This document shows, in pieces, positions 1 through 57,244 of a stretch of 64,000 bases of DNA. Position numbers and translations under genes: made by a program. The stretch's first letter is position 1, and each line of letters starts with the position of its first letter. The notes under the pieces were generated by a model. It was not told where the DNA came from, did no database searches, and worked only from the letters and a program-made list of their open reading frames with translations. The stretch spans positions 1 through 64,000 of IMG/VR virus record IMGVR_UViG_3300011113_000805. One strand, written 5' to 3'.

Positions 1-818
1 AGCAAGAGAGATCCATTCACGTGGAGACCTGCTGGGATGGAGGTGATGCCTGAGTAGGTGAGGTCGAGATCACCCTTCACGATCCTCTGATCTTTAGGTA
101 AGCGCTTTAGACGTTTGAGAATCATTATCGGGTCCCACTTCCCAGTTTCGAAATCGCCCATTGCCGAGCGACGGAGAGCCGACTGCTGCACGGGTCGGCC
201 CTCTCTGGCACTGACATCAGGACGATCAAGGGGTGTGAGAAGAGCTGCTCTGTCAACGGGTGTCCAGGATTTAGAATCAACCCGCTTCCACGCCATTGGG
301 ACCGCGGTCGTTGGGTCGTAAACGACGGCGACCCTACCATCATTCCTGCCCGTAAAGACGATACCCTTTACTTCGTACTGAAGTGATTCATAGACTTCCA
401 AAGCGGAATCAGAAGTGAATCTACCTGTCGGCACACTCACAGAGCGCAACGCCTCGATGACATCTTCATTGTACCCAGCTTCCTCTGCCTGTTCAGCAGG
501 TGTGAGCTGTTTCTTGTAGACTTTCAGCGCAACATCAGGGTCAAAAATAATGTACCCGTAGAGATTCACTTTCAGTTTGATGATGTGCGAACCGTAGTCA
601 CCCTTTTCCGTCTTCGTGCCCTCGAGGTCGTAGACAGTGTAGAGGCCCTTCCCGTACAATGCACCGGCACCGGCACCCGGTGTGAACTTGTCCTGCAGCA
701 GAGCGTCGATGAGAGCCTGTGGGTCAGCTCCTGTTCCATGGTAGACGACAGCCTGGGCGCCGTAGACTTCTTCCAGGAGCAGGGTTTCACGAATGAGAGA
801 ACGGAGGAGATGTGTCAT
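1..818 (-). CDS. ADP-ribosyltransferase-fold + LRR protein, paralog 1 (runs off the left edge)
   Basis: Not in the ORF track. Manual translation of both ends gives MTHLLRSLIRETLLLEEVYGAQAVVYHGTG...LYGKGLY and RLPKDQRIVKGDLDLTYSGITSIPAGLHVNGSLLL in the same frame. Constant 1178-nt offset to the paralog at 815-1996. ATGA start/stop overlap at 815-818. Confidence 0.85.
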   Translation of the reverse strand, partial: MTHLLRSLIRETLLLEEVYGAQAVVYHGTGADPQALIDALLQDKFTPGAGAGALYGKGLYTVYDLEGTKTEKGDYGSHIIKLKVNLYGYIIFDPDVALKVYKKQLTPAEQAEEAGYNEDVIEALRSVSVPTGRFTSDSALEVYESLQYEVKGIVFTGRNDGRVAVVYDPTTAVPMAWKRVDSKSWTPVDRAALLTPLDRPDVSAREGRPVQQSALRRSAMGDFETGKWDPIMILKRLKRLPKDQRIVKGDLDLTYSGITSIPAGLHVNGSLL

Positions 819-2011
819 TTTAGTTTATCCTTGAGGTGCTGAGGGACACCTGCCCAGTAATCACTATCGAAATAGTAGATTTTACTACCCACCTGGAGGT
901 CTGCTGGGAGGGAGGTGATGTCTGTGTTCCGGAGCATGAGACTGCCACCTACCTCGAGACCTGCCGGAAGGGAGGTGATACCTGTGAAGCTGAGGCCAAG
1001 ATTGCCGCCCACCTTGAGACCTGCTGGGAGCTCCTCGAGGTCTCTGTTGAAGTCGAGGTAGAGACTACCCTTCACATTGAGGCCTGTTGGAAGGGAGGTG
1101 ATGCTTGTGCGGTTGAGGTAGAGATCACCGTCCACCTTGAGACTTAATGGGAGCTCCTTGAGGCTTCTGTTGTCGGAGAGCCAGAGATCACCCTTCACAT
1201 GGAGACCTGTTGGGAGAGCGGTAATGTCCTTGTCGATGAGGGCGAGATCGCCCTTCACGATCCTCTGGTCTTTAGGCAGGCGCCATAGATGTTTGAGACT
1301 CATTATCGGGTCCCACTTCCCAGCTTCGAAGTCACCCATTGCCGAGCGACGAAGAGCCGACTGCTGAACGGGTCGACCCTCTCTATCACTGACATCAGGA
1401 CGGTCAAGGGGTGCAAGAAGAGCTGCCCTGTCAACAGGTGTCCAGGATTTGGTACCAACCTGCTTCCACGCCATTGGGACCGCTGTCGTTGGGTCGTAAA
1501 CGACCGCGACCCTGCCGTCGCGACTACCCGTGAAGACGATACCCTTTACTTCGTACTGAAGTGATCTATGGGCTTTCAAAGCGGAATCAGAAGTGAATTT
1601 GTCCGTTGGCACTTTCACAGAGCGCAACACCTTAATGACATCTTCATTGTACCCAACTTCCTCTGCCTGTTCAGCAGGTGTGAGCTGTTTCTTGTAAACT
1701 TTCAGCGCAATGTCAGGGTCAAAGATGATGTACCCATAGAGATTCACTTTCAGTTTGATGATGTACTTGCCATAGGTACCCCTTTCCGTGAGCGTGTCAT
1801 TGAGGTCATAGACGGTGTAGAGGCCCTTTCCGTACATTGCACCGGAACCGACACCTGGCATGAACTTGTCCTTCAGCAGAGCGTCGATGATAGTCTGAGG
1901 GTTAGCTCCTGTTCCGTGGTAGACAACAGCCTGAGCGCCGTAGACCTCTTCCAGGAGTAGGGTTTCACGAATGAGAGAACGGAGGAGATGTGTCATTTTA
2001 TTTTTAGTCAT
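815..2011 (-). CDS. ADP-ribosyltransferase-fold (PARP-like) + leucine-rich-repeat protein, paralog 2
   Basis: YHGT and MYGKGLY PARP-like motifs. C-terminal 21/22-aa LRRs (LPxGLxVxGxLxL...ITS). Likely start MTHLL at 1996. Confidence 0.8.
   Translation of the reverse strand: MTKNKMTHLLRSLIRETLLLEEVYGAQAVVYHGTGANPQTIIDALLKDKFMPGVGSGAMYGKGLYTVYDLNDTLTERGTYGKYIIKLKVNLYGYIIFDPDIALKVYKKQLTPAEQAEEVGYNEDVIKVLRSVKVPTDKFTSDSALKAHRSLQYEVKGIVFTGSRDGRVAVVYDPTTAVPMAWKQVGTKSWTPVDRAALLAPLDRPDVSDREGRPVQQSALRRSAMGDFEAGKWDPIMSLKHLWRLPKDQRIVKGDLALIDKDITALPTGLHVKGDLWLSDNRSLKELPLSLKVDGDLYLNRTSITSLPTGLNVKGSLYLDFNRDLEELPAGLKVGGNLGLSFTGITSLPAGLEVGGSLMLRNTDITSLPADLQVGSKIYYFDSDYWAGVPQHLKDKLK
880..1260 (-). repeat. About 6 tandem 63-66 nt LRR-coding repeats
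   Basis: Recurring gagacctg(c/t)tgggag...ggtgat and cccttcacat/ccaccttga units. Confidence 0.8.
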
Positions 2012-2068
2012 TATAAGCAGCTTTATAATAAAATTGCTAAGCTCTTTTGATTAATCAGCGGATTTTAT

Positions 2069-3766: not shown

Positions 3767-3778
3767 AAGATACCTTTG

Positions 3779-4546
3779 TCACTTTTTGGTGGATTTCTTG
3801 GTATTGGGCATACCAGTGGCAACGATATGTGCGGCCTGTGCGGCGGCGTAGGGCTCATCAGCCCAACTGAATGCACCTGACTTCACGGCCTTCTTGGTGG
3901 ATCCACCGCTCTTCTTAAGGGCATCCAAGGATCCCTTTGAGGCAGCATATTGCTTACCGGCATACTTTTTCTTCTTTATGCCGGCCTCGGACATTGCTCC
4001 GGATCTATTGTACTCATAAGTAAGATAATCGGCAATAACATCAATCATCTCATCAACAACGGCAATCTTCTCCTGAACCCATTCAGGAAGATCATCGGCA
4101 TCACCCACCATGTCATGCAATTGCTGCGCCTTTGAGGAGATGGAGAAGAGGTTGGATTTAATCATGCCTGCCTCCTCATGCGGATTCGAATCTTCAAATG
4201 AAAGACCGTTACCAGAGCTTACGGGATGGTACTGCATCAGTGCCTGCTGCTCCATTTCCTCACATGCGCATTCGTGAATGATTTGCCTGATCTTGGAAAG
4301 TGTCTTTGATTCAGTGATTCCAGTTCGAAATCCTGGCGCTAGCACCTTTCGACGAATGATGTCTGCATTCTTGAGAATGTTAGCGGCATCATCAACCGAG
4401 AGACCAAACTCTATGATAAGGTCACCAATCGTGAGGTTCTCAATCAGGGCCAATGAGTCCTCAGGCAAGAGTTGACCGTTATAACTTCCATGAAGTGTCT
4501 CAATAATTGAAGCCAAGGTATCAACTTTTTTCTTATCAAATGACAT
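3779..4546 (-). CDS. Hypothetical phage protein, possibly virion-internal
   Basis: 255-aa ORF with SD GGAG and an ATAGTTA motif upstream; internal LSKIRQIIHE motif and DLPEWVQEKI helical domain. Confidence 0.6.
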   Translation of the reverse strand: MSFDKKKVDTLASIIETLHGSYNGQLLPEDSLALIENLTIGDLIIEFGLSVDDAANILKNADIIRRKVLAPGFRTGITESKTLSKIRQIIHECACEEMEQQALMQYHPVSSGNGLSFEDSNPHEEAGMIKSNLFSISSKAQQLHDMVGDADDLPEWVQEKIAVVDEMIDVIADYLTYEYNRSGAMSEAGIKKKKYAGKQYAASKGSLDALKKSGGSTKKAVKSGAFSWADEPYAAAQAAHIVATGMPNTKKSTKK

Positions 4547-4562
4547 TTAGCTCTCCCAGGTT

Positions 4563-4570
4563 ATAACTAT
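4563..4570. promoter_or_regulatory. Bidirectional ATAnnTA late-promoter-like motif
   Basis: ATAACTA (+) and ATAGTTA (-) overlap in the 27-nt gap between divergent genes. Confidence 0.55.
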
Positions 4571-5490: not shown

Positions 5491-7308
5491 TCACTCAACG
5501 GTAACAGATTTTGCAAGATTTCTTGGCCTATCGATATCCTTGCCAAGAATTCTTGCTGTCTCATATGCAATAAGCTGAAGTGGAACAACAGTAACTAGAG
5601 GTGTGATGAGATGATGAGCCAGGTGTGGAACCTTGATAATATGATCAGCAATGCCTGCTAATGTCCCATCACTAGAATCCGTGACAATGATAATTTTGGC
5701 ACCTCTTGCCTTTGCCTCAATGATATTGGAGAGTGTTTTCTCGAACCAGCGATCCTGTGGGATTACAGCGACAACAGGTGTCTCACAGTCTATCAAAGAG
5801 ATGGGACCATGTTTCATCTCCCCTGCAGGATATCCAAATGATGGAATGTAAGATACCTCCTTGAGTTTAAGCGCCCCTTCACATGCAACAGGGGCCGAGA
5901 CACCTCTGCCAATAAAGAAAACTTGTCGGGCACATGATATCACCTTAGCGACATCAAGGGTCCTGTAATAATCATCACTTGAGAACCACTCTTGCAATAA
6001 GAATGGTGTCTGCAGTAATGAGCTTGCAAGGTGTGATCGCTGTTCATAAGAAAGCCCTCGAGACTTGCCAAAGTATAGTGACATTAGTACTAGGGCGGTG
6101 ACTTGTGATGTGAACGCCTTTGTGGAGGCAACAGACATTTCAGGTCCTGAGTGGATATAGATGCCATTCCCACATTCACGAGCGATAGTGGATCCTACGG
6201 AATTAACTATGCCGGTCGTTAGGGCCCCACGCTCGCGAGCCATTCTCATTGCATGAATTGTATCAGCAGTTTCACCAGATTGTGTAACACCCACAAAGAG
6301 ATCGCAAAGATCTATTTGTGGTGTTCGATATCGAAGTTCGGAGGCAATCTCAGCAGATGCCCTAAGACCGGCAAGTTCCTCTAAAGCATGAACACCTACC
6401 TGTGAAGCATAGTGCGATGTTCCACAAGAAACAAGGCTAACATGGTTAAGACTTGCAATCTGCGCTGGTGTTAAGGAAATGCCGCCAAGTTTCGCTCCAT
6501 CATGCACAATCCTTCCTGCAAGGCACCTCTCCATAGAGACAGGCTGTTCCCAAATCTCCTTCAGCATAAAGTGAGGAAATTCACCCATCTCACCAAGGCT
6601 TGATGTGTCAGGGACTGTCTCAGCATGCCTCTCAACCCGACCAGCAGGAATAAAAACCTCGTATCGATCTGGCCAGATAGAGGCGATATCACCGTCCTCG
6701 AGGTAGACGATATCACGTGTGTACTGAGATATTGCGGATGGATCACTTGCAATAAATGATTCATCCTTTCCAATCCCAATAATGAGCGGTGAGCCATTTC
6801 TTGCTAGCAATAACTGCTCGCTTCCCTGCATTGCAACTGCAATGCCCCAGGTACCTCGAAGCCTCATGACTGCCTGTCTAAATGCTTCCAGAGGAGAGGC
6901 ATCACGAAGATAGTGCCTGATAAGGTGAGGAATCACCTCGGTATCAGTCTCGGAAAGAAACTTTATGCCGATTGCTTCAAGTTCATTCCGGAGAGTGGAA
7001 TAGTTCTCGATAATGCCATTGTGAACAACAGCAATTTTTTGCTTGATATCAAAGTGAGGATGTGTATTAGGAATTGTCACACCACCATGTGTTGCCCACC
7101 GTGTATGGCCAATCCCTGTTCTTCCCTTACGAGCAGGAAGTTCTGCGAGATTTTTCACCTGTCCTAATGCCTTGCTATGATGAATCTTTTCACCAGAAAC
7201 AATGGCGATTCCGGCACTGTCATACCCACGATACTCCAGTCTTCGAAGGCCCTCGAGAAGAATGGGTGATGCCTGCTTTTTGCCTGTGTAACCTACAATT
7301 CCGCACAT
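5491..7308 (-). CDS. glmS: Glutamine-fructose-6-phosphate aminotransferase
   Basis: MCGIVG start at 7308 with SD GAGG; EYRGYDSAG, GHTRWATHG, QSGETAD, C-terminal DRPRNLAKSVTVE. Confidence 0.97.
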   Translation of the reverse strand: MCGIVGYTGKKQASPILLEGLRRLEYRGYDSAGIAIVSGEKIHHSKALGQVKNLAELPARKGRTGIGHTRWATHGGVTIPNTHPHFDIKQKIAVVHNGIIENYSTLRNELEAIGIKFLSETDTEVIPHLIRHYLRDASPLEAFRQAVMRLRGTWGIAVAMQGSEQLLLARNGSPLIIGIGKDESFIASDPSAISQYTRDIVYLEDGDIASIWPDRYEVFIPAGRVERHAETVPDTSSLGEMGEFPHFMLKEIWEQPVSMERCLAGRIVHDGAKLGGISLTPAQIASLNHVSLVSCGTSHYASQVGVHALEELAGLRASAEIASELRYRTPQIDLCDLFVGVTQSGETADTIHAMRMARERGALTTGIVNSVGSTIARECGNGIYIHSGPEMSVASTKAFTSQVTALVLMSLYFGKSRGLSYEQRSHLASSLLQTPFLLQEWFSSDDYYRTLDVAKVISCARQVFFIGRGVSAPVACEGALKLKEVSYIPSFGYPAGEMKHGPISLIDCETPVVAVIPQDRWFEKTLSNIIEAKARGAKIIIVTDSSDGTLAGIADHIIKVPHLAHHLITPLVTVVPLQLIAYETARILGKDIDRPRNLAKSVTVE

Positions 7309-7344
7309 GATGTGATTATCCTCGCTTTGATTTGTTTGTTCAAT

Positions 7345-7384
7345 TAAATAACAAATGCCCAGGTTGAATATCCAACCTGGGCAT
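7345..7384 (-). terminator. Hairpin, probable intrinsic terminator
   Basis: Perfect 12-bp stem atgcccaggttg (7355-7366) / caacctgggcat (7373-7384), T-rich tail on the minus strand. Confidence 0.6.
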
Positions 7385-7402
7385 GTCTGTTGCAAATTTT
7401 AC

Positions 7403-8096: not shown

Positions 8097-8395
8097 CGCC
8101 TTGCCTTCTTGGAACGCAATTCTTCAGAGATCATCTCAACCATCGCCTCCTGAAAGCGAGGATCGGTGGCGACACGATAAGCCTCACGATCCAACTCATC
8201 ACCGGTTTTACCATGAAGAGCAACGAGAGGACGAGAAACCTTCAGTAGGCCACGAAGAAGGACATTTCGCGCAGTCGCATGATTCATCTCATCACCATCG
8301 GCGGTCATTTGCTCGGCAATCTCACGAAAGCCTAGACCAACACCGGTGACAGTGGAGTAGCCATGATTAAACTTCTGACCCTTAGGCATAGACAT
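8093..8395 (-). CDS. HTH protein resembling sigma region 4.2
   Basis: GFREIAEQM...NHATARNVLLRGLLKV; TGATG overlap with the sigma stop codon. Confidence 0.6.
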   Translation of the reverse strand: MSMPKGQKFNHGYSTVTGVGLGFREIAEQMTADGDEMNHATARNVLLRGLLKVSRPLVALHGKTGDELDREAYRVATDPRFQEAMVEMISEELRSKKARR

Positions 8396-9165
8396 CAAAC
8401 ACCTCCACAGCGAGAATCAAGTACGTCAACTTCGGCCTGACTGATAGGAAAATCCCCATCATTGTCAGGATCTTCAGAGATTCCGAACCTAAGTCGAATG
8501 ATTTTCTCCTCACGAGGACTCAGCGCCTGGAGTGCATCACGAACAATTGCAATCATGCGCTCTCGATCAATAATGTCCGTTGCGTCCTGCTGATTCTCAT
8601 CGGTCAGGGTCTCATGAAGTCGAGGACCCTCACCATCACCGCCAGGAACCTGACTGTCAAGGGAAAGAGTGCCTCGATACGTATTCATCAGAACCTGGTA
8701 CCGATCGATTGAGACACCCATAAACTCGGCAACCTCCTCATCGGAAGGCGGAGATCCAAGCTCACGGGTGTAATCTTGAATCATCATCTTTGCGCGATAG
8801 TAGAAGGCATTGGCCGACGCAGGCATCCGAATATTGCAACTTTGATCTACCAGGTGACGACGGACAGACTGCTTAATCCACCACGTGGCATAGGTGCTGA
8901 ATTTGAAGCCACGACGCCAGTCGAAACGATCCACAGCCTTCATCAGGCCAATGTTGCCCTCCTGAATAAGATCTTCGAATGAAGACCCCTTATTCATGTA
9001 TCGCTTAGCGATGGAGATTGCCAGGCGCAGGTTGGATTGAATGAAAATCTCACGAGCCTGTCGATCACCAGCCTCAATTCGCTGAGCTAGCACTGCTTCT
9101 TGTTCACGAGTAAGCAGCGGGTGATTACCAACATTTTTGAAGAAGCCTGTCAAGGTGTCGGACAT
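8395..9165 (-). CDS. RpoD/RpoS-family sigma factor, lacking region 4.2
   Basis: NLRLAISIAKRY, DLIQEGNIGLMKAVDRFD..RGFKFSTYATWWI, LSLD, LSPREEKIIRLRFG, then ends without the HTH. Confidence 0.92.
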   Translation of the reverse strand: MSDTLTGFFKNVGNHPLLTREQEAVLAQRIEAGDRQAREIFIQSNLRLAISIAKRYMNKGSSFEDLIQEGNIGLMKAVDRFDWRRGFKFSTYATWWIKQSVRRHLVDQSCNIRMPASANAFYYRAKMMIQDYTRELGSPPSDEEVAEFMGVSIDRYQVLMNTYRGTLSLDSQVPGGDGEGPRLHETLTDENQQDATDIIDRERMIAIVRDALQALSPREEKIIRLRFGISEDPDNDGDFPISQAEVDVLDSRCGGV

Positions 9166-9247: not shown

Positions 9248-11291
<2,044 letters not shown>

Positions 11292-12598: not shown

Positions 12599-12949
12599 TC
12601 AGCGCTTAAAACCAATTCCTGGAAATCCCATTGTCACAGTGCCAGGCCTAGACCTTGTACGACGACCATGAACCTGTCCAGAGGTGTACTCGTAATTGCG
12701 CATATCACGTGACTTAAGAGATCTTGAGATCTCGTCACGAATGACACGACGAAGATCAAAGCTCTCCTCAAGCTCCTGAAGCTCGCTCTCATCGATCTCG
12801 TAGACCTCCTGAGGAGACTCATCAAGTTCATCTGCCATGTCAGCCTCGTCCAAATCGTCTGCCTCTTCTAGTTCTGAATTGTCAATTGTTGTTACTGACT
12901 CTTTAAGAAGGCCGGCCAACTTTGCAACTCTTGCTGTCTGAAACTTCAT
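12599..12949 (-). CDS. Acidic hypothetical protein (scaffold/internal-like)
   Basis: RVAKLAGLLKES, repeated LEE/LDE, LRRVIRDEI; SD GGAGG and ATACATA upstream. Confidence 0.6.
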   Translation of the reverse strand: MKFQTARVAKLAGLLKESVTTIDNSELEEADDLDEADMADELDESPQEVYEIDESELQELEESFDLRRVIRDEISRSLKSRDMRNYEYTSGQVHGRRTRSRPGTVTMGFPGIGFKR

Positions 12950-12973
12950 AATACCCTCCAATTTTTTATGTAT

Positions 12974-14042: not shown

Positions 14043-15242
14043 TTAAATTGAAGGACGTTTACCTGCTTCATCAATTTTTTTGAGACCATCCTTCACGGTT
14101 CTAGCAAGGGCACCTTCCGGATCAATGCTCTCAAGAAGTTCAAGTGGTACATCCTCGAGGAACTTTCTCTTGAAGACTTCGCGCATCTTCTCTGTCTGGG
14201 GGATAATCTGCTTCTTGGCCGCCAGCATTGCCTGGCCAAGTAAATTTTTCATCTGATAAGCCTTCACGGCATCTAACAATCCTTTCTCATCAAGCATTTC
14301 AGCATCCAGTTCAGTCTTCAATTTTTCAAGGCTTCCTTTCTCCTCAGCTGTCTTAATTACCCTTTTAGCTGAGTTTTCCAAGAACTCCGGAGTAAGCTTG
14401 TCAATTCCATTTACGGAGATTGGTGAATTCTTGAGAATTTGAATTGCTGATTTCACATCATTAATAGCCTTGGCCCTGGAAAGCTTATCTAGAAAATCAG
14501 TAGGTGCACTCAGGACTTGAGACAATGTTGCTGCTTCTTTCCTTTTCATCTCAATATAGCCCATAGCATCCTTATTTGAGACTTTGAAAACATCAGGAGG
14601 TGCATTTCGAAATGCCTGAAGCATCTCCTCTTTGGAGGCATTTATTTTTGCTTCACGAATTAAAGACTCACCCAGAGATTTTCCAAAGACGGCATCCAGC
14701 TTGCGTTTGATTTGATTCAACTGTCCGATTGCTGCATCGCTAGGCGTGCGGCTATTTGGGCCTTGAGAAACAGTACCCGCGTCGGGCAGCAGTGGATCTT
14801 TTAGATATCTTCTAAACCAATCTGCCTTAATTATACCTGTGTCTTCCAAGAACTTTAAAGATTCTTCAAAGTTTTCTGAGGAAGCTTCGGCAAACTTATA
14901 TGCAAGATATGGACCAGGATTGGTGATAAAAACAAGAGGTTCAATAGGACCAAGCTCACTAATAATAGGCTCTGTGATTGTCCTATATTGACTAGTCAAT
15001 CTTTGATCAACTTGATCGTATCTTTGAAAGATATCTTCGATTTTTTTCATATCTTGGGTGAATGTGACTTTTATGTTTAACACCAAGACAGCTATTAGAC
15101 TTTTAAGGCCAATTTGCATCACCTTAAAAACATTCGTGAATGAATTCCAGATTTGTTTTAATTCGTTAACGTCAAGGTCACCAGGCGCTTCAGTAAGCAG
15201 CACCTCCTTTTGAATATACTTTCTTAGATCCTCTTCTCTCAC
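14043..15242 (-). CDS. Hypothetical helical protein, putative virion-internal
   Basis: 399 aa; N-terminal LRKYIQKEVLLTE motif. Confidence 0.7.
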   Translation of the reverse strand: MREEDLRKYIQKEVLLTEAPGDLDVNELKQIWNSFTNVFKVMQIGLKSLIAVLVLNIKVTFTQDMKKIEDIFQRYDQVDQRLTSQYRTITEPIISELGPIEPLVFITNPGPYLAYKFAEASSENFEESLKFLEDTGIIKADWFRRYLKDPLLPDAGTVSQGPNSRTPSDAAIGQLNQIKRKLDAVFGKSLGESLIREAKINASKEEMLQAFRNAPPDVFKVSNKDAMGYIEMKRKEAATLSQVLSAPTDFLDKLSRAKAINDVKSAIQILKNSPISVNGIDKLTPEFLENSAKRVIKTAEEKGSLEKLKTELDAEMLDEKGLLDAVKAYQMKNLLGQAMLAAKKQIIPQTEKMREVFKRKFLEDVPLELLESIDPEGALARTVKDGLKKIDEAGKRPSI

Positions 15243-16280: not shown

Positions 16281-16633
16281 TCAAAGGACACCTCTCTACT
16301 ATGTATTGCTGTCACGGTGCAAATTTGTGATGCGATATCACAAGATACACTTTGTATGAGGAAAACTCTTGAAAGCTGCCTATCTGATATCTCAAGTGTA
16401 GCATTAATGGATTCCGCAAGAAGACCGAATGGGTCGGCCGTGGCGACAAACGTGATGCTCAGCTGGCTTGTGTCATATGCAAATCCTTTGATTAAGCCAA
16501 CATCATTACCACCAATGACAGCATGAGGTGATAAACCTGTGGTCTCTTTTGCCGACTGAGATTTGCCTAAGGCCTCAAGGAGACCTTCGGATGCGTAGAT
16601 GTCTCCATCAATGTCCTCTAATCTCACGGGCAA
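16277..16633 (-). CDS. Hypothetical protein
   Basis: 118-aa operonic ORF. Confidence 0.55.
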   Translation of the reverse strand: MPVRLEDIDGDIYASEGLLEALGKSQSAKETTGLSPHAVIGGNDVGLIKGFAYDTSQLSITFVATADPFGLLAESINATLEISDRQLSRVFLIQSVSCDIASQICTVTAIHSREVSFE

Positions 16634-16952
16634 TCTCCTCTATGGTAGCCTTAAATTTCAAAGGAATTTCATTTTCAGATGTGATTGTGACGCTAAAACC
16701 GTCTATTCGGATTGGAATATAAGTTCCTGTCTCATCCTCCAACTCCATATAGGCAACTATAAAATCTTGAAGATCCTCACGGGTTTCGAATTTAATAGTC
16801 CTCTCCAGGTCATCAGTGAGTTCCCAGCCTAAATTCTCAACAGGAACAGGAAACTCTTCGACAGGACCAAAGTTAGGAAGAAAATCCCAGCGCCTAGTCG
16901 GTGCAGGTCTCTGGTTCTCAATATATTCACGAAGGAGTGTCTTAAGTTGCAT
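16608..16952 (-). CDS. Degenerate pterin-4a-carbinolamine dehydratase-like fold protein
   Basis: GWELTDDLERTIKF...LQDFI; lacks the HHP motif; N-terminal LKTLLREY. Confidence 0.45.
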   Translation of the reverse strand: MQLKTLLREYIENQRPAPTRRWDFLPNFGPVEEFPVPVENLGWELTDDLERTIKFETREDLQDFIVAYMELEDETGTYIPIRIDGFSVTITSENEIPLKFKATIEEIAREIRGH

Positions 16953-16953: not shown

Positions 16954-17313
16954 TCAGACCTCGGATTGGACCTCTTCGGCCTCCAGGTTATACTTGTCAA
17001 TCATTGCCACAAATTCCCTGTAAAACTTACCAACCAACTCTGATGGTACCAAGGATGAAAGTGAGTCAAGTGCCTTACCTAGTTCCTCAGGATTTGCCGG
17101 CTCAAATTCAGGATCCTCAACAGGAGGGCGCTGAGCATGTAGCTGAGTTGCTACCTGATCACTTGGGTTGATAGGAAGACGAGACGGAACCGTAATGTCC
17201 ATCTGCTTATCATCCCTACCATGTTGGGTGGTGCCAGGTGTTGTCGCAAGTGCCTCTCTCAACACCTGTCGTATTGCCTCGGTCGAGGCTGTGACCCTTA
17301 GTCTGCTTTTCAT
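16954..17313 (-). CDS. Hypothetical protein
   Basis: SD AGGAG, CATACATA upstream; AIRQVLREAL motif. Confidence 0.65.
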   Translation of the reverse strand: MKSRLRVTASTEAIRQVLREALATTPGTTQHGRDDKQMDITVPSRLPINPSDQVATQLHAQRPPVEDPEFEPANPEELGKALDSLSSLVPSELVGKFYREFVAMIDKYNLEAEEVQSEV

Positions 17314-17829: not shown

Positions 17830-18299
17830 GCCGTGGGAGTCCTTGCACCTACAGCTATATTATTGCTTGTATTGTGATCCTGTTTATCTTCATTGGAGAC
17901 ATCGTACTGAGTGTCCATCACTTCCAGGAAGTCGGCTGCAACATCATCACCATGAGCATTCTGAACGTAGTTGTGCGCCATCTCCAGGATAGTGCCCTTG
18001 ATATCCAGAAGCACATTAGCATTCTCAATAAGCCTGGCCACCTCGGATGCGAATGACTCAAGGTTCATCTCCGGACGATCAGGCTTATCATCCTCCTCCG
18101 GGGCAGCCTCGAAGAGCCAATTCATACTTTTTGACCTAAGTGACTCTTCAATGGAAACATCATCAAGTGGATTGCGTGCCGTGGCCACACCGATGGAGAG
18201 CTTCTCAGCCTTGGTGAAGAACCTAAGAACTTGAGCATCCAGTGACTCCTCTGGGCTAATATTGGGATCACTGGTCTCGAATAGGAACTTCCTCTTCAT
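17826..18299 (-). CDS. Hypothetical protein
   Basis: ATGA-coupled; FLFE/WLFE motifs. Confidence 0.65.
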   Translation of the reverse strand: MKRKFLFETSDPNISPEESLDAQVLRFFTKAEKLSIGVATARNPLDDVSIEESLRSKSMNWLFEAAPEEDDKPDRPEMNLESFASEVARLIENANVLLDIKGTILEMAHNYVQNAHGDDVAADFLEVMDTQYDVSNEDKQDHNTSNNIAVGARTPTA

Positions 18300-19003
18300 G
18301 ACATCACCACCTTTGCAATCCTCTCGGCTTTCTCTACCCTCTCCTCAATCTTACTCCAGTTGAGCTCACGCATCATTGCATAGATGTAAGACTTTCGATC
18401 TTTAAGGTAGTCAGCGTAGTAAGTGTGTTCCCAGCAATCCACCACAATAATGGGAATGCACCCAAAGGGAACATTGAGACAATGAAGATCCACCACCACG
18501 TTAATGTAGCGCTTTAGGAATGTGCTATAGCAGGTGACGACCCAGCCGTTTCGAGCTGACATCCCGCAAGCAATAAAGTCCTTCTGCCACTTGTTGAAGT
18601 CACCCCAGTCTCGTGCAAGCCTCATATAGGCCAGGGAATCCACGGTGACACGCGAACTAGGCGATCCGACATTGTCAAAGAAAAGACCGTGAAGGAATGC
18701 CGCATTGAGATTGTGGGCCTCGTCTATCTTCAGGTTCCGGAAAGCCGAGTTATTGGGATTTGCTCCCTCCCTGTCAGCCGTATCCAGCTGAGCTGAGACT
18801 TCATTAAGAGCCTTCACGTAGCCGTCTAGAAGCTCCTGGTGTGCAGCTCGAGACTTCTCAGAGAGGGAGTCGGTCTTCACATCGAACTTTTTCGACTGGA
18901 CAACATAAGCTTCCTCGAGACGCTTCTCACGTCTGGGTGGAACCGGTGTCTCAGAGAGTGCTTCCTCCACCATCCTCTCCAGGAGCTTTTCGTTAATTTT
19001 CAT
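18296..19003 (-). CDS. Fe/Mn superoxide dismutase-like protein with N-terminal extension
   Basis: GYVKALN, FLHGLFFDN, GWVV, PIIVVDCWEHTYY. Confidence 0.85.
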   Translation of the reverse strand: MKINEKLLERMVEEALSETPVPPRREKRLEEAYVVQSKKFDVKTDSLSEKSRAAHQELLDGYVKALNEVSAQLDTADREGANPNNSAFRNLKIDEAHNLNAAFLHGLFFDNVGSPSSRVTVDSLAYMRLARDWGDFNKWQKDFIACGMSARNGWVVTCYSTFLKRYINVVVDLHCLNVPFGCIPIIVVDCWEHTYYADYLKDRKSYIYAMMRELNWSKIEERVEKAERIAKVVMS

Positions 19004-19461
19004 CAGGCCTCCTTATAGTACTTCTCAAACTCTTTCTGGTCAACAACAAACATAGTCTCACCGGTGTCATTCTCCGGAGGCGCCTTGGTCTTTGGATAAG
19101 CCCTGCTGCCATAATCCCGCTTGTCTTGCCCCTTGTCATTATCTTCAGGATTAGAGTCCTCAGCAACTGCATTGGTGGAGACAGGCTCAGCAGGTGCTGC
19201 CTGTGGGGTTCCATCAGATATGGGCTGGACTCTGGGCTCCTCCGGAGCGCGGAGAACCACCTTGGCGGATCCTGGCTCACCGGTGACACCCTTTACAGTA
19301 TAGACAAAACCCGAAGGTTTATGCATCACCTTGAGATCCTTGCCGATAACCATGACACCACGAGAGTCAAAAAGGGCAACTTCCTCCAACTTCTGTAGAA
19401 GTTGGGACTCATACTCCTCACGAAGGAGACGAATAACACCAGATTGTGTGAGCTTTTTCAC
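19003..19461 (-). CDS. Hypothetical protein
   Basis: N-terminal VIRLLREEYE; coupled on both sides. Confidence 0.65.
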   Translation of the reverse strand: MKKLTQSGVIRLLREEYESQLLQKLEEVALFDSRGVMVIGKDLKVMHKPSGFVYTVKGVTGEPGSAKVVLRAPEEPRVQPISDGTPQAAPAEPVSTNAVAEDSNPEDNDKGQDKRDYGSRAYPKTKAPPENDTGETMFVVDQKEFEKYYKEA

Positions 19462-25334: not shown

Positions 25335-25431
25335 ATATCCTCCTGTTAGGAATAACTTTTCATTATAATGGTGAGTTGCAATTTTGTCATTGAATAGCTC
25401 AAAAGCACATATTTATTTCTTTGAGGAAGCG

Positions 25432-44722: not shown

Positions 44723-45190
44723 TTAACGATAATTGCTCCACTTATGGCGGGGATCATCAGGACCCCGAAGTCCCACGGTATCCCACGGATCAGGTTTCAT
44801 AGGGTTCCATGGTTCCCTTGGTGGCACACCATACAAGGCCTCTCTCCGCTTTTCTTCCTCCCGATCCGCAGCATTCCTGGCTTCCCATTCTTTGTTAGCC
44901 TTTCGAGTTGCAGCAGTCTTTGACTTAATCGCAGCAATTTCATCAGGTGATTTCAAACTCCTTTGATACTTTTGATTAGCAGATCTGAATTTAGAGATAG
45001 CTGCAGGACCAAAGAAAGACTGATCAATATCAGCGTACTTTAGTTCTCCTGATAAAATGCTGTCACACATTTCATTAACGAGACTAGCGATTCTAGAATT
45101 AAAATCATTGCTAGCATCAACAGACTCGTGAATCATGCCATCAATTTCTTCTTTGACTATCCTGCGCAATTGGCTCTCAGTAAGTTTCAT
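44723..45190 (-). CDS. Hypothetical protein, putative virion-internal
   Basis: Start MKLTESQLRRIVKEEI at 45190 (SD GGAG, ATATGTA upstream). Confidence 0.65.
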   Translation of the reverse strand: MKLTESQLRRIVKEEIDGMIHESVDASNDFNSRIASLVNEMCDSILSGELKYADIDQSFFGPAAISKFRSANQKYQRSLKSPDEIAAIKSKTAATRKANKEWEARNAADREEEKRREALYGVPPREPWNPMKPDPWDTVGLRGPDDPRHKWSNYR

Positions 45191-48618: not shown

Positions 48619-51120
48619 TTATGATAACTTAACTCTGTCACCGATATTAATGTCCTTTAATTCTGCCCATGCCTCAAGACCATCATCATCGTTAAGCAAA
48701 ATAAACTTATGATCTAGTGTTGTTTTGATGCTTAATCCGGATTTTGTGGTCACACGATAAACCGGCTTAACACCTTGATCTGAGACAAATCCAATCATTG
48801 CTAAACGGCCATGATGATTAACCGTCATGAGGTCACTAACAGTTGCCGAACTTTCAGATTGACAGTTAGAAAGCTCGGCAATTTCATCGGCATAAAGCAA
48901 CCCACTATCTGTTTCAACAAGAGAATCACCTGATACACAAGTTTTAGAAATTGAGTGATCAACCCATCGCTGGGCAGCCGCTTGAATCTTTACCGAATTT
49001 ACCCAGTCAATGTCATTTGCAGTTGCACCCCAATATGGACTTTCCTGAGGATCTGACTTACCCGTGATATCCATCCACTTTTTGAACCAATGATGATAGA
49101 CAGTATATTCCTGCCACTTATCACCCATTGGATCCACAAAATCAACTCGGGATGTGATATCACCCTGCGTGATCTTTCGACGACGTTTATAGGAGAGCAG
49201 GAATGCTGGTTCAATTCCGGATGTTGTCTGGGTTAGGATGGAAACAGATCCTACAGGTGCTGTGGTTGTGAGGGCAATATTACGACGACCCGATGTGCGC
49301 CACATCTCGAGGGCACCTGGTGACTCAGTCTCGACTACCTGCATAATCTTGCCAAGGTAGCTATGTCCTTTCTCTTTCTCCCAGTCCCAGACAGGGAAAG
49401 CACCACGCTCGTGTGCCATCACTAGTGAGGAGTAGTGAGACCAGGTGGCCAGTGATTTGTAGATCTTCTCAGTAACCGCAATAGACTCCTCTGAGCCATA
49501 CCGAAGTCCTAGTGCTGCCAGGGCATCACCAAGGCCCGTGATCCCAAGTCCTGTCCTGCGACCATTGCTACCGGCAGCACGAATCTTCTCCCAGAGATCC
49601 TGTTCAATCTGCTTCACATGCTTGGGCTGTGGATCGTTCTTGATTTTCTCCAGAATGCGATCGACACACTCGACCTCAAGATCAACAAGGTCATCCATTA
49701 GGCGCTGTGCATCCTGAGTGACAGTTGCAAACTCATCAAAATTGAAACTTGCATTTGGCGTAAATGGGTTTCGAATGAATGAGGTGAGATTGATCACCAT
49801 CAGGCGGCAAGAGTCATATGGGCTGAGCGGGATTTCTCCACAATTGTGAACCAGAATATCATTTGCAAAGAAATTATGTACATCATCAACGGTTAGATCA
49901 TAAACATCTTCATTTTTTACCGCTGAGATGTCTTGAATTTCATCCCATTCTGTATTAATTTTGAGAATTTTATCACTAGTTTGAAGCTCGCCCGCCTCAA
50001 TCCAGCCTCTCTGTGTAAAAACTCTGTGATCAGGAGTTAGCTTAATTGATTTACCACTCTTTGTGGTAAGTTGCAGAATTTTTGCATCTTCCTTTGTTTT
50101 GAAAGCAGTCGCTGTTTTCTGTACAACCTTATTTTCCTTAATGTCATATGCACAAACCATAAACTGTGCATTATTATCTGCAAGTTCTTTAACAGTCTTT
50201 GGTCCTGCATTTGTTTTTACAACTGTGTCACCGGTGACACACGGATTCGTTGAGATTGTCTTGTATCCGACATCCCTATAGCAATCGACAATGCCTTCAT
50301 TGACCACCGTATCCCAGAAAAGAGCTCCAGGTTCAGCAGATGCCCAGGCAGCATCAATAAACTTCTCCCAAACTTGCCTTGCATTGACCACGCGTGTAAT
50401 CTCAGCATCTTCAGGAGCTGCCTCTACGGGCCATCGAAGAGTAAAGTCCTCGCCCTTCTCAACCGCCCGCATAAACTCATCAGTAAATCTGATTGAGATA
50501 TTTGCACCGGTAACTTTCTTAAGGTCACGCTTGATGTCAATAAATGTTTCAAGCTCAGGATGATTACAATGAACGGTTAGCATCAGGGCCCCACGCCGGC
50601 CGCCTTGAGCAACTTCCCGTGTAGAGTTGGAGAAGCGCTCCATAAAGACACCGATACCATCAGTCGTCCGGGCCGCATTGGTTGTTGGTTGTCCCTTTGG
50701 ACGAATGGTGGAGATGTCAAAGCCAACGCCTCCGCGGCGCTTCATAATCTGCACCTGTTCCTGATCGCTGAAGAGGATGCCGCCGTAGGAGTCGTGAGGC
50801 TGATCAATAACAAAACAGTTGGAAAGTGACTGAAGCTGATGAGGATTGCCAATTCCTGACATTGGCGATCCCTGAGGGACTACTTGGGCAAATCCCGTGA
50901 GGAGACTCAGGATTCTTTCCTCACTGAGTGGGTTTGGATACTTTGCCTCGATCCTCGCAAACTCCTTTGCAAGCCGTGTATGTAGCTGCCCAGGATCGGT
51001 CTCTAGCAAGTCACCCTGATGATTCCTGAGAGCGTACTTCAGAAAGACATCCGGTGCAAGCTCATCACCGCCAAAGGCCTCACGAAGGTGTTCAAGAACG
51101 CTTTGATTTTTGTTACTCAT
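48619..51120 (-). CDS. nrdJ: Class II RNR N-terminal part with a cis mini-intein and a split N-intein (48619-48939)
   Basis: SLSNCFV, GGVG, RRGALM, EPGA, TNP|C..HN|CGE, RRTGLG, APVGS, SISKT|CVSGD...TTLDHKF. Confidence 0.93.
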   Translation of the reverse strand: MSNKNQSVLEHLREAFGGDELAPDVFLKYALRNHQGDLLETDPGQLHTRLAKEFARIEAKYPNPLSEERILSLLTGFAQVVPQGSPMSGIGNPHQLQSLSNCFVIDQPHDSYGGILFSDQEQVQIMKRRGGVGFDISTIRPKGQPTTNAARTTDGIGVFMERFSNSTREVAQGGRRGALMLTVHCNHPELETFIDIKRDLKKVTGANISIRFTDEFMRAVEKGEDFTLRWPVEAAPEDAEITRVVNARQVWEKFIDAAWASAEPGALFWDTVVNEGIVDCYRDVGYKTISTNPCVTGDTVVKTNAGPKTVKELADNNAQFMVCAYDIKENKVVQKTATAFKTKEDAKILQLTTKSGKSIKLTPDHRVFTQRGWIEAGELQTSDKILKINTEWDEIQDISAVKNEDVYDLTVDDVHNFFANDILVHNCGEIPLSPYDSCRLMVINLTSFIRNPFTPNASFNFDEFATVTQDAQRLMDDLVDLEVECVDRILEKIKNDPQPKHVKQIEQDLWEKIRAAGSNGRRTGLGITGLGDALAALGLRYGSEESIAVTEKIYKSLATWSHYSSLVMAHERGAFPVWDWEKEKGHSYLGKIMQVVETESPGALEMWRTSGRRNIALTTTAPVGSVSILTQTTSGIEPAFLLSYKRRRKITQGDITSRVDFVDPMGDKWQEYTVYHHWFKKWMDITGKSDPQESPYWGATANDIDWVNSVKIQAAAQRWVDHSISKTCVSGDSLVETDSGLLYADEIAELSNCQSESSATVSDLMTVNHHGRLAMIGFVSDQGVKPVYRVTTKSGLSIKTTLDHKFILLNDDDGLEAWAELKDINIGDRVKLS
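49843..50241 (-). mobile_element. Cis mini-intein (133 aa, no endonuclease) at the RNR active-site NPCGE
   Basis: CVTGDT...TPDH...VYDLTV..HNFFAN..VHN|C. Confidence 0.92.
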
Positions 51121-51121
51121 G

Positions 51122-52507
51122 TCACTTTGCTCCCATAACTTGTTTCCACTTCTCTCGCAGGACATTCTTCCTGCTATTGTCATCCTGGGTTATTGCTTCC
51201 TGTAAGGTGAGCTCACCCTCATCTAGAACTTTAATGGTAGAACGAGCCGTGTCAATGTGAATAGGAAAAAGAATGCCATCACGTCCTGCTCGATTCTTTG
51301 CTACAAAAAGCCTTCCCATTCCTGTGGCCTTTTCGGCAGGCTTTCGGGAGAGAGAGAGGACCACGTCAGCCACCATTGCCTTGCCATAGGACTCTGACAT
51401 ATTCTCAAGGCCAACAATGTCAGAATTTGAGGAGTCACGATTTGCCTGGGATGCCGTCCAGATGGGAATGTTTTTCTCCATTGCCAGGTTTCGAAGCTCC
51501 TCATAAATAAGCTTAAGCTCAAGTCTTAGGGCATCATACTCTCGCGATGATCGCATAATATCAGCATAGTCGATGAGAATCAGATTAGGAACAAATCCTC
51601 TCAACGAGAGCTTCTCGAGGTGATTTCGAAGGGTATTGACAGTTGCCGTGCCTGTAGGATACTCCTTGATGATGAGCTTGCCTAGCTCCATATCCTTGTA
51701 CTTGTCCATTACCTCCTGCTTTGAGTCCTGGATCTCGTTGGACGGGATCTCAGTCAGGTGAGAGTCATAGCGAATGCCAACCGCTGTCTCAGTGAGCTCA
51801 AACGTATAATGAACAACATTCTTTCCTCGTTTCAGGGCGTTTGCTCCCAAGGAGACAAGCATATGGCTCTTGCCGACACCGGTATTTGCAGCAATAACCC
51901 CTAGCTCACCGCGACCAAGGCCTCCATTAAGGACTGTCTTCTCGTCAAGCTGATCAATACCGGTAGGACATGCAGCGCGATTGATCTTAACAAAACGAGC
52001 TTCAGCATCCTCAAAGAAGTCATGACCAACAGATGTGGGCAGGCCTACGGAGACTGCCTTGCGCATAAGATCAACGACGGCATCATACTTGTCACCTGAA
52101 ATAAGTTCGACAGATTTCTCAAGTGCCTCACGAAGGGCTTGCTTCCTGCAAAAATCAAGCGCCTTATCCTTCACATATGCAATGTCACCCATGTCAGGTG
52201 AGTGACGCATACGACCCAGGTACTCTACAATTTGCTCCTTAAGGACAGCATTGCTTGGCTCACGCAGCTCATCCTTGATGATGGAGATGAGCAAGGAGAG
52301 AGTCGGAAACGAGCGATACTTGCCATTGTACTTGAAGTACTTGTCACTGAGGTAAGCAAGGTATTTCAAGTCAAAGTAGTTTGGTTGCATCACCTCTGAC
52401 ATTTGTGCGGCCCAGGTATGATCGGTCAGGAGGCCCTGGAAGATCTTTTCCTGAAAGGGTTTGCCATACTGCTTGAATAACGCTTCACCGGGACTATTGT
52501 CAGACAT
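51122..52507 (-). CDS. DnaB/gp41-like replicative helicase
   Basis: ANTGVGKS, IIKEYP, IDYAD, WTASQANR, KNRAG. Confidence 0.92.
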   Translation of the reverse strand: MSDNSPGEALFKQYGKPFQEKIFQGLLTDHTWAAQMSEVMQPNYFDLKYLAYLSDKYFKYNGKYRSFPTLSLLISIIKDELREPSNAVLKEQIVEYLGRMRHSPDMGDIAYVKDKALDFCRKQALREALEKSVELISGDKYDAVVDLMRKAVSVGLPTSVGHDFFEDAEARFVKINRAACPTGIDQLDEKTVLNGGLGRGELGVIAANTGVGKSHMLVSLGANALKRGKNVVHYTFELTETAVGIRYDSHLTEIPSNEIQDSKQEVMDKYKDMELGKLIIKEYPTGTATVNTLRNHLEKLSLRGFVPNLILIDYADIMRSSREYDALRLELKLIYEELRNLAMEKNIPIWTASQANRDSSNSDIVGLENMSESYGKAMVADVVLSLSRKPAEKATGMGRLFVAKNRAGRDGILFPIHIDTARSTIKVLDEGELTLQEAITQDDNSRKNVLREKWKQVMGAK

Positions 52508-53462: not shown

Positions 53463-53468
53463 GAATTA

Positions 53469-54686: not shown

Positions 54687-54703
54687 TGCTTCTCCTAAGC
54701 GAT

Positions 54704-54755
54704 ATTGTAGTTGGAAGTAAAGACATGTTCACCCCGGATTTGAACCCGGGGTGAA
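54704..54755 (-). promoter_or_regulatory. Hairpin after the SSB gene overlapping the recA sigma70-like promoter
   Basis: 10-bp stem ttcaccccgg/ccggggtgaa (54728-54755); GTGAAC-N17-TACAAT. Confidence 0.6.
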
Positions 54756-54777
54756 TTCATTGTGTGGCTAAACCTGA

Positions 54778-55608: not shown

Positions 55609-55705
55609 TTGATTTTTCCTTATGTTTGTTGGTTGGTTGCTGTCATGGTAGTCATCAAAGGCGTCACCCCCGCTGATGACCTCAGTGTGGTCCTGCCACA
55701 GTGAG

Positions 55706-55734
55706 ATTATAGTAATTGTCTCTTAGGTTTTCAA
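55706..55734 (-). promoter_or_regulatory. Sigma70-like promoter of the SSB gene
   Basis: TTGAAA-N17-TATAAT. Confidence 0.65.
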
Positions 55735-56108
55735 TATTTCCATTGTAGAAATTTTGATACCGCAGCTCTATTCTTGAAAGGAGACTTTGCTCCTCCATAT
55801 GCCCGGGCAAGGCATTCGACAGAAGACTCATAGGTTTCTGTCCTATCCCTAAAGTGATTTGTCTCGAGATTATCCAAAACTCCATTGTTATTGAGATCAA
55901 GCATTGCAATGGTTAAACCACTACCGACAGTATTGACCTCACGTAGGCGTCGCTTCTTCGGAGAAACACTTGGATTCGGATAAGTTGCAGGAGCACCAAG
56001 AGGCACAGTTGCACCAGCAATTGCGCCGGCACCGGAAAACTCATCCAAATCCTCCTCGTCCAGCTCATAAATCATTTCACGAATAAGTCTTAAGAGTTCA
56101 TCTTGCAT
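55731..56108 (-). CDS. Hypothetical protein, putative virion-internal
   Basis: MQDELLRLIREMI...LDEFSGAGAIAG; CATAGATA just upstream. Confidence 0.6.
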   Translation of the reverse strand: MQDELLRLIREMIYELDEEDLDEFSGAGAIAGATVPLGAPATYPNPSVSPKKRRLREVNTVGSGLTIAMLDLNNNGVLDNLETNHFRDRTETYESSVECLARAYGGAKSPFKNRAAVSKFLQWKY

Positions 56109-56136
56109 AAGACTATCTATGCTAGACGATGTGAAC

Positions 56137-56727
56137 TTACACACTACTGGAAGAGTTTCGATACACCCACTGACGAGCCTGTGTCAGGAGGACAGCCAGT
56201 GCAGGTTCGGAGCCAACATAGAAACGGTTCTCCTCTCGTTGGGGACCTCCGGCGACCGCGATCGCGACCCACTCCTCAGGAGTCAACTTGACGCCCCAGT
56301 GCTGAAGCAGCTGTAAGGAACGATGAGCGATGGGAACCTTAGGAAGGGCCTCATTGTAGCGGTAGAGTCTTCCCTGCTTCCTGTGCCAGTCGGAGTCTTG
56401 GTCCAAGAGGTAAGGAGTCTCCACCGAGCCTACCATTCCAATTGCATGGAAGAGCCCAGACATTACAATGGATTCTGTTGGAATGTGATCCATGTCGAGG
56501 GCGGCCGCTAAGGTACGCATAGTGCCGGTGACCTCAATGGACATTCGAATGAGGCCACCAGGCTCCGACCATCCCTCATGCTCCTGTAAGGTGGCAGGAC
56601 ACATAATGATCCTTTCACCGAGAGCATCCAACATCTGTGCAATTGGTTCGGATCGACTGCCTGTCGCAGCAGCGATCTTAGAGAACTTACGGAAGTGTTG
56701 TTGCAGCGTTTCTAGTGTTTGTGTCAT
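56137..56727 (-). CDS. Degenerate HD-domain protein
   Basis: CPA..H...PGGLI, LFHAIGMVG (HD changed to HA), HRSL.LLQ..GV.L..EEW.AI. Confidence 0.7.
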   Translation of the reverse strand: MTQTLETLQQHFRKFSKIAAATGSRSEPIAQMLDALGERIIMCPATLQEHEGWSEPGGLIRMSIEVTGTMRTLAAALDMDHIPTESIVMSGLFHAIGMVGSVETPYLLDQDSDWHRKQGRLYRYNEALPKVPIAHRSLQLLQHWGVKLTPEEWVAIAVAGGPQREENRFYVGSEPALAVLLTQARQWVYRNSSSSV

Positions 56728-56764
56728 ATAGAACTTTATGGCGCTGGTTTCAAATGTTCAAAAA

Positions 56765-57244
56765 TTAAGCTCGAGCACTTACAATAATCCTGCACTTCTT
56801 TTCATTTTCATTTATCTGTCGCCTATAGTATAGCCTTGCGCTCGAGGAGATGTCAATTATTTTTTTAGTAGCGCTGGCATCCAAGATTGCCTTAAGATAG
56901 CGCCAGCCATTGGATCCTCTCTGGCCCACGGCAGTTGTTGGCCATGCCTCATCATTGATGACAAGATTAATGATGATTCCTTCATCTTCTACATCAGGTG
57001 TCTCAAAGACATCAGAAAGAACATCCGAATCAATTGCCTTTTCTAGTATTTCGGATGGTTTTAGCTTTTCTCCATCTGCGTCAATGCCAAGATCCTTCAA
57101 TAGCCCACTTGGATCAGACTTTGCTCGTGCCTCGGCATCGGCAGCGCCAAGAGTTTTTCCTCCAACGTTAGACTTATCTTCCCAGTCAGAAGATTCTTTA
57201 AGAATAAGACGCGTGTAGTGTCTAATAAACTGATTGGTATTCAT
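56765..57244 (-). CDS. Hypothetical protein
   Basis: FIRHYTRLILKES; CATAGATA just upstream. Confidence 0.6.
   Translation of the reverse strand: MNTNQFIRHYTRLILKESSDWEDKSNVGGKTLGAADAEARAKSDPSGLLKDLGIDADGEKLKPSEILEKAIDSDVLSDVFETPDVEDEGIIINLVINDEAWPTTAVGQRGSNGWRYLKAILDASATKKIIDISSSARLYYRRQINENEKKCRIIVSARA

Follow-up and report, generated by a model that had tools for sequence, protein, structure and literature searches.

The window analyzed here comprises bases 1-64000 of the linear, 257,178-bp IMG/VR viral contig IMGVR_UViG_3300011113_000805 (CheckV completeness 76%), on which ~85% of the open reading frames (ORFs) lie on the minus strand. Its genes include a set coding for otherwise unrelated proteins that start with variants of one short peptide, hereafter the tag, which a preliminary description of this DNA had read as a head-packaging and cleavage signal of the kind known from phage T4 internal proteins. 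Each peptide listed in that description was found in its place, all of them on the minus strand except the one at 25384-26919. The instances differed in quality: when scored with the motif hidden Markov model (HMM) defined below, six were strong and three intermediate, while four were at chance level.

The six strong instances lie within positions 3-56108. The gene at 3-818, whose C-terminal end is cut by the contig start, begins with MTHLLRSLIRETLLLEE (about 762-818; 18.1 bits) and encodes a paralogue of its neighbor at 815-2011. The latter (20.1 bits) encodes a 398-aa protein composed of the tag helix (about 1946-2011), an ADP-ribosyltransferase (ART)-like domain starting VVYHGT and C-terminal leucine-rich repeats (LRRs); its homologues begin at the second ATG (MTHLL...). 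The gene at 14043-15242 uses a GTG start and carries the tag VREEDLRKYIQKEVLLTE/A (15183-15242; 11.3 bits; here and below, a slash marks an observed or candidate cleavage position) on a 399-aa protein without a Pfam or PHROG match. A 114-aa acidic protein (16608-16952) begins with MQLKTLLREYIE (16902-16952; 13.3 bits), its ATG lying 2 codons ahead of the motif core. The canonical form, MKLTESQLRRIVKEEI (45125-45190; 17.9 bits), heads a 155-aa protein at 44723-45190 and fits the strict DNA pattern used below, and a 125-aa protein at 55731-56108 begins with MQDELLRLIREMIYE (56049-56108; 10.5 bits).

Intermediate matches were obtained for the 119-aa protein at 16954-17313 (IRQVLREAL; core 13 residues into the protein; 9.9 bits, close to the noise ceiling), for an internal segment (about 4238-4303; residue 82; 9.7 bits), with no start codon close by, of the 255-aa protein at 3779-4546, whose N-terminal part contains several [LI]xE sites, and for the Fe/Mn superoxide dismutase (SOD) at 18296-19003 (Pfam Sod_Fe_C, E = 8e-18). 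The SOD has a tag-like N-terminal extension, MKINEKLLERMVEEALSE/T (18938-19003), that scored only 6 bits. The chance-level instances are VIRLLREEYE of the 152-aa protein at 19003-19461 (<3 bits), the weak IRHYTRLILKE of the 159-aa protein at 56765-57244, which the HMM missed, a weak internal copy in the 120-aa acidic protein at 12599-12961, whose N-terminal region reads ...AKLAGLLKE, and the C-terminal ...LEMIVRDCIREMIFSKN (about 26863-26916) of the 511-aa, plus-strand product of 25384-26919, which was found by regular expression only and which matched no family.

To define the tag across the genome, the core was written as the regular expression [LIVMF][RK]xx[LIVMFY][RKQ]E and run on the ORF set of the 257-kb contig, with shuffled sequences as the control. 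It gave 35 matches compared to 7.9 +/- 2.7 in the shuffles, and within the first 40 residues 16 matches compared to 1.5 +/- 1.3. The motif HMM, iterated for two rounds over all stop-to-stop ORFs, identified 44 genes with an N-terminal tag, about 13% of ORFs and more than the preliminary description had seen, while the thousands of off-frame ORFs contributed a single 40-aa ORF at >=10 bits. Together, the shuffles and the off-frame controls rule out chance or low complexity as the origin of the tag. Its consensus is M-(R/K)-I-T-E-S-x-L-R-x-L-I-R-E-(E/T)-L-L-x-E-(A/S/E), ~20 residues at the extreme N-terminus, with the start codon (ATG in 40 of the 44 genes, GTG in 3 and TTG in 1) positioned 2-13 codons upstream of the core. 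The tags had been called amphipathic, and this holds for the average (mean hydrophobic moment 0.49, compared to 0.36 in shuffles) and not beyond it. By the HMM, the replication enzymes examined (the Pol III alpha-like polymerase, ribonucleotide reductase (RNR), DnaB and UvsX) lacked the tag, as the preliminary description had stated.

With the tags removed, an all-against-all BLASTP comparison resolved the 44 proteins into 24 unrelated groups, namely a family of 16, a family of 6 and 22 singletons. Pfam named an Fe/Mn SOD, a zeta-toxin/AAA_33 kinase, a cytidylyltransferase-like nucleotidyltransferase and a GNAT protein; beyond these, Pfam and PHROG scans of ~30 tagged proteins returned nothing. 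Median pI was 5.8. The members of the family of 16 have C-terminal LRRs in common and an N-terminal domain of one of two ART-like types, and these ~16 paralogues, with variable numbers of LRRs, are arranged in tandem arrays (L015:12357-19190, L018:5930-11862, L019:13088-16475 and window 3-2011). The first type, that of 815-2011 and its paralogues, is marked by an H-G-T motif. In the AlphaFold2 (AF2) model of 815-2011 (pLDDT, the per-residue confidence score, 89), the LRR domain resembled those of SspH1, IpaH and YopM (Z = 11-13), and the N-terminal domain weakly matched AcrIF11, PARP10 and exotoxin A. The second type, about 250 aa long or fused to LRRs, retains invariant R (YRG), S (SSW) and ExE motifs in 10 paralogues. 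Its AF2 model (pLDDT 82) placed cholera toxin A1, Vis, LT and pertussis S1 at the top of the Foldseek list, all as weak matches (E = 0.02-0.5, TM about 0.3). One member of this R-S-E family has a ~150-aa insert between tag and catalytic domain, and its tag is still terminal. Given that neither family matched Pfam or PHROG, and that hhalign found no homology between the R-S-E family and T4 Alt (probability 0.6%), we regard the ART-LRR identity of the family of 16 as plausible, albeit unproven.

The terminal extension of the SOD recurs outside this contig. More than 100 metagenomic homologues of the enzyme were all extended at the N-terminus, with variants that differ by lineage and end in [LIV]-x-E, and the version found here resembles the T4 gp24 propeptide, MAKINELLRE/S. 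In each match listed the extension measured 20-45 residues, examples being IINQVVAQAIAE and DVIRESLT.

We next considered what is conserved in the tag. Among 34 non-redundant tags, information resided in codon positions 1 and 2 with position 3 near random, and Leu and Arg were each drawn from both codon families. The conserved unit is therefore the peptide, and judging from these codons selection acts on the peptide rather than on the DNA. The tag was retained in 119 homologues of the 815-2011 protein. A few of these instead began with MRLTRxQL(K/R)xLIR, followed by a second LLLEE, which shows the different forms of the tag to be interchangeable. In the AF2 models of both 815-2011 and the R-S-E family, the tag was a low-confidence helix apart from the domain; in 815-2011 the helix covers residues 3-21, and only residues 22-24, at LLLEE/VYG, had a pLDDT <50.

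The same contig encodes a T4-type head module (82.6-94.5 kb) with the gene order large terminase, portal, a 287-aa protein, a Peptidase_S77 (gp21) protease, proteins of 150, 90, 173 and 198 aa, a 613-aa acidic scaffold-like protein and the capsid protein. The protease was identified by Pfam (PF03420, 53 bits, above cut-off) and by PHROG ("head maturation protease", E = 2e-47). Its His, Ser and Asp align with the catalytic residues of T4 gp21, and its N-terminal LLTE-W aligns with LLIE-TW of the T4 enzyme. The protease gene (L010:10364-12076; G000 88364-90076) contains a ~357-aa intein-like insert between ALGE and CDHP that starts with Cys, has a LAGLIDADG-like middle, ends with GN followed by Cys, and was missing in four related phages; an intein-free S77 gene of a related contig lies, for example, at L060:3279-3881. 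The insert interrupts the gene directly beside the catalytic His and must be spliced out. The capsid protein (L010:4664-6589; G000 82664-84589) is gp23-type and 641 aa long, with its best matches in Mel-JY01, a Microcystis phage (35% identity over 96%), and in LR756508, an uncultured genome of 484 kb (48% over 65%). Its N-terminal region ends ...QILKE/ANS, the T4 gp23 counterpart being ...FLTE/AEIGG. A large insertion separates Pfam Gp23 positions ~83 and ~126 of the protein, a long form that also occurs in IMG/VR relatives and in Mel-JY01.

The tag is present within this module as well. The 150-aa gene directly after the protease starts (V/M)TRDDLKSLVKECLLEIIIE, and MSKTVTLTPALLRRIVLEE opens the 90-aa gene. 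Three related contigs keep this gene order; their corresponding ~150-aa and ~90-aa genes start MSKISKSKLKTLIKECLVEILTE and ...LTPALLRKIVLEE or variants thereof, and in a fourth the gene immediately after the protease begins MRITEGKLRSLIRE. In T4, the positions between protease and scaffold encode prohead core proteins.

T4 gp21 cleaves after L/I-X-E (PMC9026906). The tag consensus contains ITE, IRE and LLxE, that is, up to three [L/I]-x-E motifs. An [L/I]-x-E lay 3-16 residues past the core in 40 of 44 tags, compared to 55 of 214 untagged N-termini, a comparison that is partly circular because the IRE core belongs to the profile that defines the tag; in 30 of the 44 the motif fell at +8 to +10. 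When the proteins of the genome were ranked by density of [LI]xE sites, the scaffold-like protein, with 19 such sites, ranked 10th of 249, and its head-module neighbors of 287 and 150 aa ranked 4th and 11th. Rank 1 was taken by the acidic protein at 12599-12961, with 5.8 sites per 100 aa, a density that recalls the T4 core proteins degraded during maturation.

Next, we searched IMG/VR for the tag by an exact scan with degenerate DNA for M-R-I-T-E-x-x-L-R-x-L-I-R. Twelve contigs matched, against about 0.4 expected by our own rough estimate of random frequency, and they displayed up to seven consecutive genes starting with the tag. All four of the matching contigs of at least 132 kb encoded both an S77 protease and a gp23-type capsid protein of 644-668 aa, and in two small fragments the tagged gene lay a few kb from the protease. 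LR756508 contained six matches to the strict pattern, all on one strand, and many more tagged genes by HMM.

The genes carrying the tag had been said largely to follow the motif ATAnnTA, which proved to be an overstatement: the motif precedes 4 of the 9 listed window genes. A mild enrichment is nevertheless present in the genome, with ATAnnTA upstream of 16 of 43 tagged genes (37%) compared to 38 of 214 untagged genes (18%; p = 0.007). A second element, a (G)CATAGATA-type motif, precedes six tagged genes at a distance of 13-47 nt; five of these were found by the CATAG pattern, and one has TATAGATA. Within the same range of distances it precedes 56765-57244 and the genes of the scaffold-like and 90-aa core proteins (window 56114-56122 and 57250-57258; G000 201506, 202267, 203008, 230067, 157402, 86498 and 87921). 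The form GCATAGATA stands 13 nt upstream of both 55731-56108 and 56765-57244. TATAAT, which is dominant in intergenic regions, was rare upstream of tagged genes, and the T4 late promoter TATAAATA occurred in just 1 + 1 copies in the genome. The (G)CATAGATA-type motif may thus represent a promoter class distinct from TATAAT, and its occurrence at about ten sites hints that tagged genes are co-regulated with head genes.

A "related" RLAGII/KLAGLL motif had also been described, a label that needs correction. It was not significantly enriched (4 occurrences in the genome compared to 2.2 expected), and we retain it as a motif because of its conservation at C-termini rather than its count. The scaffold-like proteins of four phages (here L010:6641-8482; G000 84641-86482) end in DRWA[VT]LAGI. 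The 639-aa protein encoded at 19458-21377 (minus strand; likely start MRQIIKQ...) ends IILE/NWQRLAGIIK (window 19458-19490), and it does so across its homologues, including one of 79% identity in which this C-terminus was kept while the sequence just before it had diverged. The motif common to these two unrelated proteins is (D/N)(R/W)W(A/Q)xLAGI. WxxLAGI is possibly a C-terminal signal separate from the tag, and a candidate for docking or cleavage shared with the scaffold. C-terminal processing by gp21 has precedents in T4 Alt and in gp21 itself (PMC9026906).

We consider it probable that the tag works as a T4-type propeptide in extended form, which targets a large set of cargo proteins to the capsid and is then cleaved. 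This agrees with the T4-style interpretation first put forward, and it draws support from the tag being an N-terminal module of unrelated proteins, the S77 protease, the cleavage motifs in the tag, the look of the T4 propeptides, the position of tagged genes in the head module, the [LI]xE density of the scaffold-like protein and its neighbors, the co-occurrence of tag, protease and capsid protein, selection on the peptide, the detached helix of the AF2 models, the R-S-E family, and the possible shared promoter. According to this model, the tagged proteins would be produced together with the head proteins, and the tag helix would bind the prohead core, made up of the scaffold-like protein and the small tagged core proteins, such that the cargo becomes enclosed as the gp23-like shell grows. 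The gp21-family protease would then cut after the Glu of an [L/I]-x-E in the tag, freeing the mature enzyme inside the head, and the cargo would exit with the DNA at infection, like T4 Alt and the internal proteins. The predicted cargo would include the two ART-like families with LRR target-binding domains, the SOD, the GNAT protein, the P-loop kinase, the nucleotidyltransferase and about 25 small proteins.

Several observations weigh against this model. Amphipathicity of the tags is only moderate, and the tagged proteins are not basic, unlike the T4 internal proteins. The ART-like families lack Pfam and PHROG matches, their assignment resting on motifs and weak fold matches. The promoter-like evidence amounts to about 10 sites, and the motif shows no genome-wide strand bias. 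Likeness to the 10-residue T4 capsid-targeting sequence (CTS) is loose, and convergence could conceivably account for it. Finally, Mel-JY01, P-HM2, immuto and LR756511 gave zero matches to the strict pattern; with the looser core pattern, these four and T4 stayed at control level, so that no cultured model phage is seen to carry the tag. LR756511 displayed a slight excess of the core pattern near its capsid gene. A tag-profile search of Mel-JY01 also returned nothing, by a method that is probably blind to 22-residue queries.

A more far-reaching version of the same idea would make the tag a general address label of a huge-phage clade, by which 40 or more effectors are delivered with the DNA on the scale of a secretion system, together with a WxxLAGI code shared with the scaffold. 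We think this unlikely, and in its boldest variant the receptor would be the phage chaperonin or an internal structure dedicated to the purpose, in place of the T4-type core. The chaperonin also figures in an explanation that involves no capsid at all, in which the tag helix mediates recognition or assembly, either as a client signal for the phage GroEL or as a self-association helix that would gather the enzymes in the cell, and in which cleavage or packaging is incidental. The phage does encode GroEL (window 9511-11118; PHROG E = 9e-135), the N-terminus of T4 gp23 directs fusion proteins to GroEL (PMC3012670), and AF2 modeled the tag as helical. We nevertheless judge this explanation quite unlikely, since it accounts neither for the protease-site motifs within the tag nor for its presence on the genes between protease and scaffold, nor for the co-occurrence of the tag, from contig to contig, with an S77 protease and a gp23-type capsid protein.

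That many of the predicted cargo proteins are potentially toxic enzymes, and that [LI]xE sites lie at the junction of tag and domain, could instead be taken to mean that the tag is a cleavable inhibitory leader of the zymogen type, which keeps toxic enzymes such as the ARTs and the kinase inactive in the producing cell until the phage protease removes it and has no role in addressing. The same tag on the SOD and on many small non-enzymatic proteins is difficult to reconcile with such a function, and in both AF2 models the helix stands apart from the domain, albeit with low confidence. Moreover, known gp21-type proteases work inside proheads (PMC9026906), so that even under this explanation a cleaved tag would place the substrates in the head. 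We hold a purely inhibitory leader to be improbable. Least of all do we expect the peptide to be a by-product of a shared 5' DNA cassette, be it a promoter, a ribosome site, a translation enhancer or a recombination hotspot, that duplication and gene conversion had spread. Tagged genes do occur in tandem arrays (176-203 kb and 225-257 kb), and 6 of 7 strict-pattern genes start with the near-identical DNA ATGAGAATCAC[AT]GAG. A cassette of this kind, however, fits poorly with near-random third codon positions and the use of both Leu and Arg codon families, with the persistence of the peptide in distant contigs that differ in codons and G+C, and with the existence of C-terminal copies, making this explanation very improbable.

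If the tag is indeed a capsid-targeting and cleavage propeptide, then roughly one in eight genes of this 257-kb phage would encode a capsid-borne protein, and the cargo of uncultivated huge phages could be read straight from sequence. Candidate effectors of host takeover or anti-defence would include the two ART families with LRR targeting domains, the SOD, the GNAT protein, the kinase and the nucleotidyltransferase. The CTS principle, which in T4 covers a few small proteins, would here apply to a modular system of large size, the tag would offer a portable means to load proteins into T4-like capsids, and the C-terminal WxxLAGI of the scaffold-like protein would be a candidate docking contact in the prohead. 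The addressing principle is already known from T4 (PMC3012670, PMC9026906). For the peptides of this tag, a full-text literature search found no describing paper; a comparative review of jumbo phages, searched by term, contained no mention of prohead proteases or leader peptides.

With respect to the remainder of the contig, a megablast search with a 5.6-kb stretch found no match among cultured phages. The two ends of the contig were tested for an overlap by which it could be circularized, and none was found; the similar peptides at these ends belong to paralogues. The contig both begins and ends within tandem arrays of ART-like/LRR genes, and assembly may have stopped there because the ends fall inside such arrays. 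The window also encodes GlmS-like (5491-7395) and sigma-70-like (8395-9165) proteins besides GroEL, and the replication polymerase (28821-31742) is Pol III alpha-like rather than of the T4-type family B, despite the T4-like head genes. The start of the ORF at 26916-27983 (region 26916-28929) resembles an intein end (...LANGLLTSNS), and residues ~313-414 of the RNR large subunit (48619-51183) match unrelated PHROGs; both regions may harbor further inteins or homing elements.

The closest known counterpart of the tag is the CTS of T4, an N-terminal peptide of internal proteins that is cleaved by gp21 (PMC3012670, PMC9026906). The propeptides that we read from NC_000866 were MKTYQEFIAE/A for IPII and IPIII, MAKINELLRE/S for gp24, MLKEQLIAE for gp22 and MELITE/L for Alt. 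As in IPI, IPII and IPIII, the tag is a short N-terminal peptide on unrelated proteins that ends in L/I-x-E, it occurs in a phage that also has a gp21-family protease, a scaffold and a gp23-type capsid protein, and the cargo genes lie in variable arrays. The tag differs in its length (about 20 residues compared to 10), in its consensus (MRITESxLRxLIRExLLxE) and in having up to three cleavage motifs. MKTYQEFIAE and the tag resemble one another loosely and are of different lengths, one tag beginning MKTYLRSLVHQILLAE. Whereas a handful of T4 genes specify small basic cargo, at least 44 genes are involved here, and their predicted cargo is mostly enzymes with LRR domains.

T4 Alt is the classic head-packaged ADP-ribosyltransferase, which gp21 processes at both ends. 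The R-S-E family has a putative signature of this type (YRG, SSW, ExE) and, as in the Alt propeptide, a short N-terminal peptide that contains I-T-E, the Alt start MELITE/L comparing to MRITE/S in the tags. In contrast to this likeness, there is no detectable homology (hhalign 0.6%), and this phage has about 10 paralogues of ~250 aa or fused to LRRs, plus the H-G-T family. The giant phages phiKZ, 201phi2-1 and SPN3US package many proteins, and a diverged gp21-like protease processes their head and ejection proteins after Glu (PMC9026906, PMC5694885). Their site is S/A-x-E, while the P3 position in the tag is Leu, Ile or Val and not Ser or Ala, with a long consensus ahead of the site, and for these three phages we found no report of a shared consensus peptide for addressing. 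In encapsulins, a short terminal peptide sends diverse enzymes into an HK97-fold shell, an analogy of logic only; these systems are not known to have a portal, terminase or protease, or to cleave their cargo peptides, whereas the tag belongs to a tailed-phage head module. The LRRs of the tagged ART-like proteins are structurally similar to those of IpaH, SspH1 and YopM, and the order of delivery signal, enzyme and LRR is likewise comparable. They differ from these effectors in having no E3 ligase domain, and in that the route of delivery here would be a phage capsid and the targets presumably bacterial.

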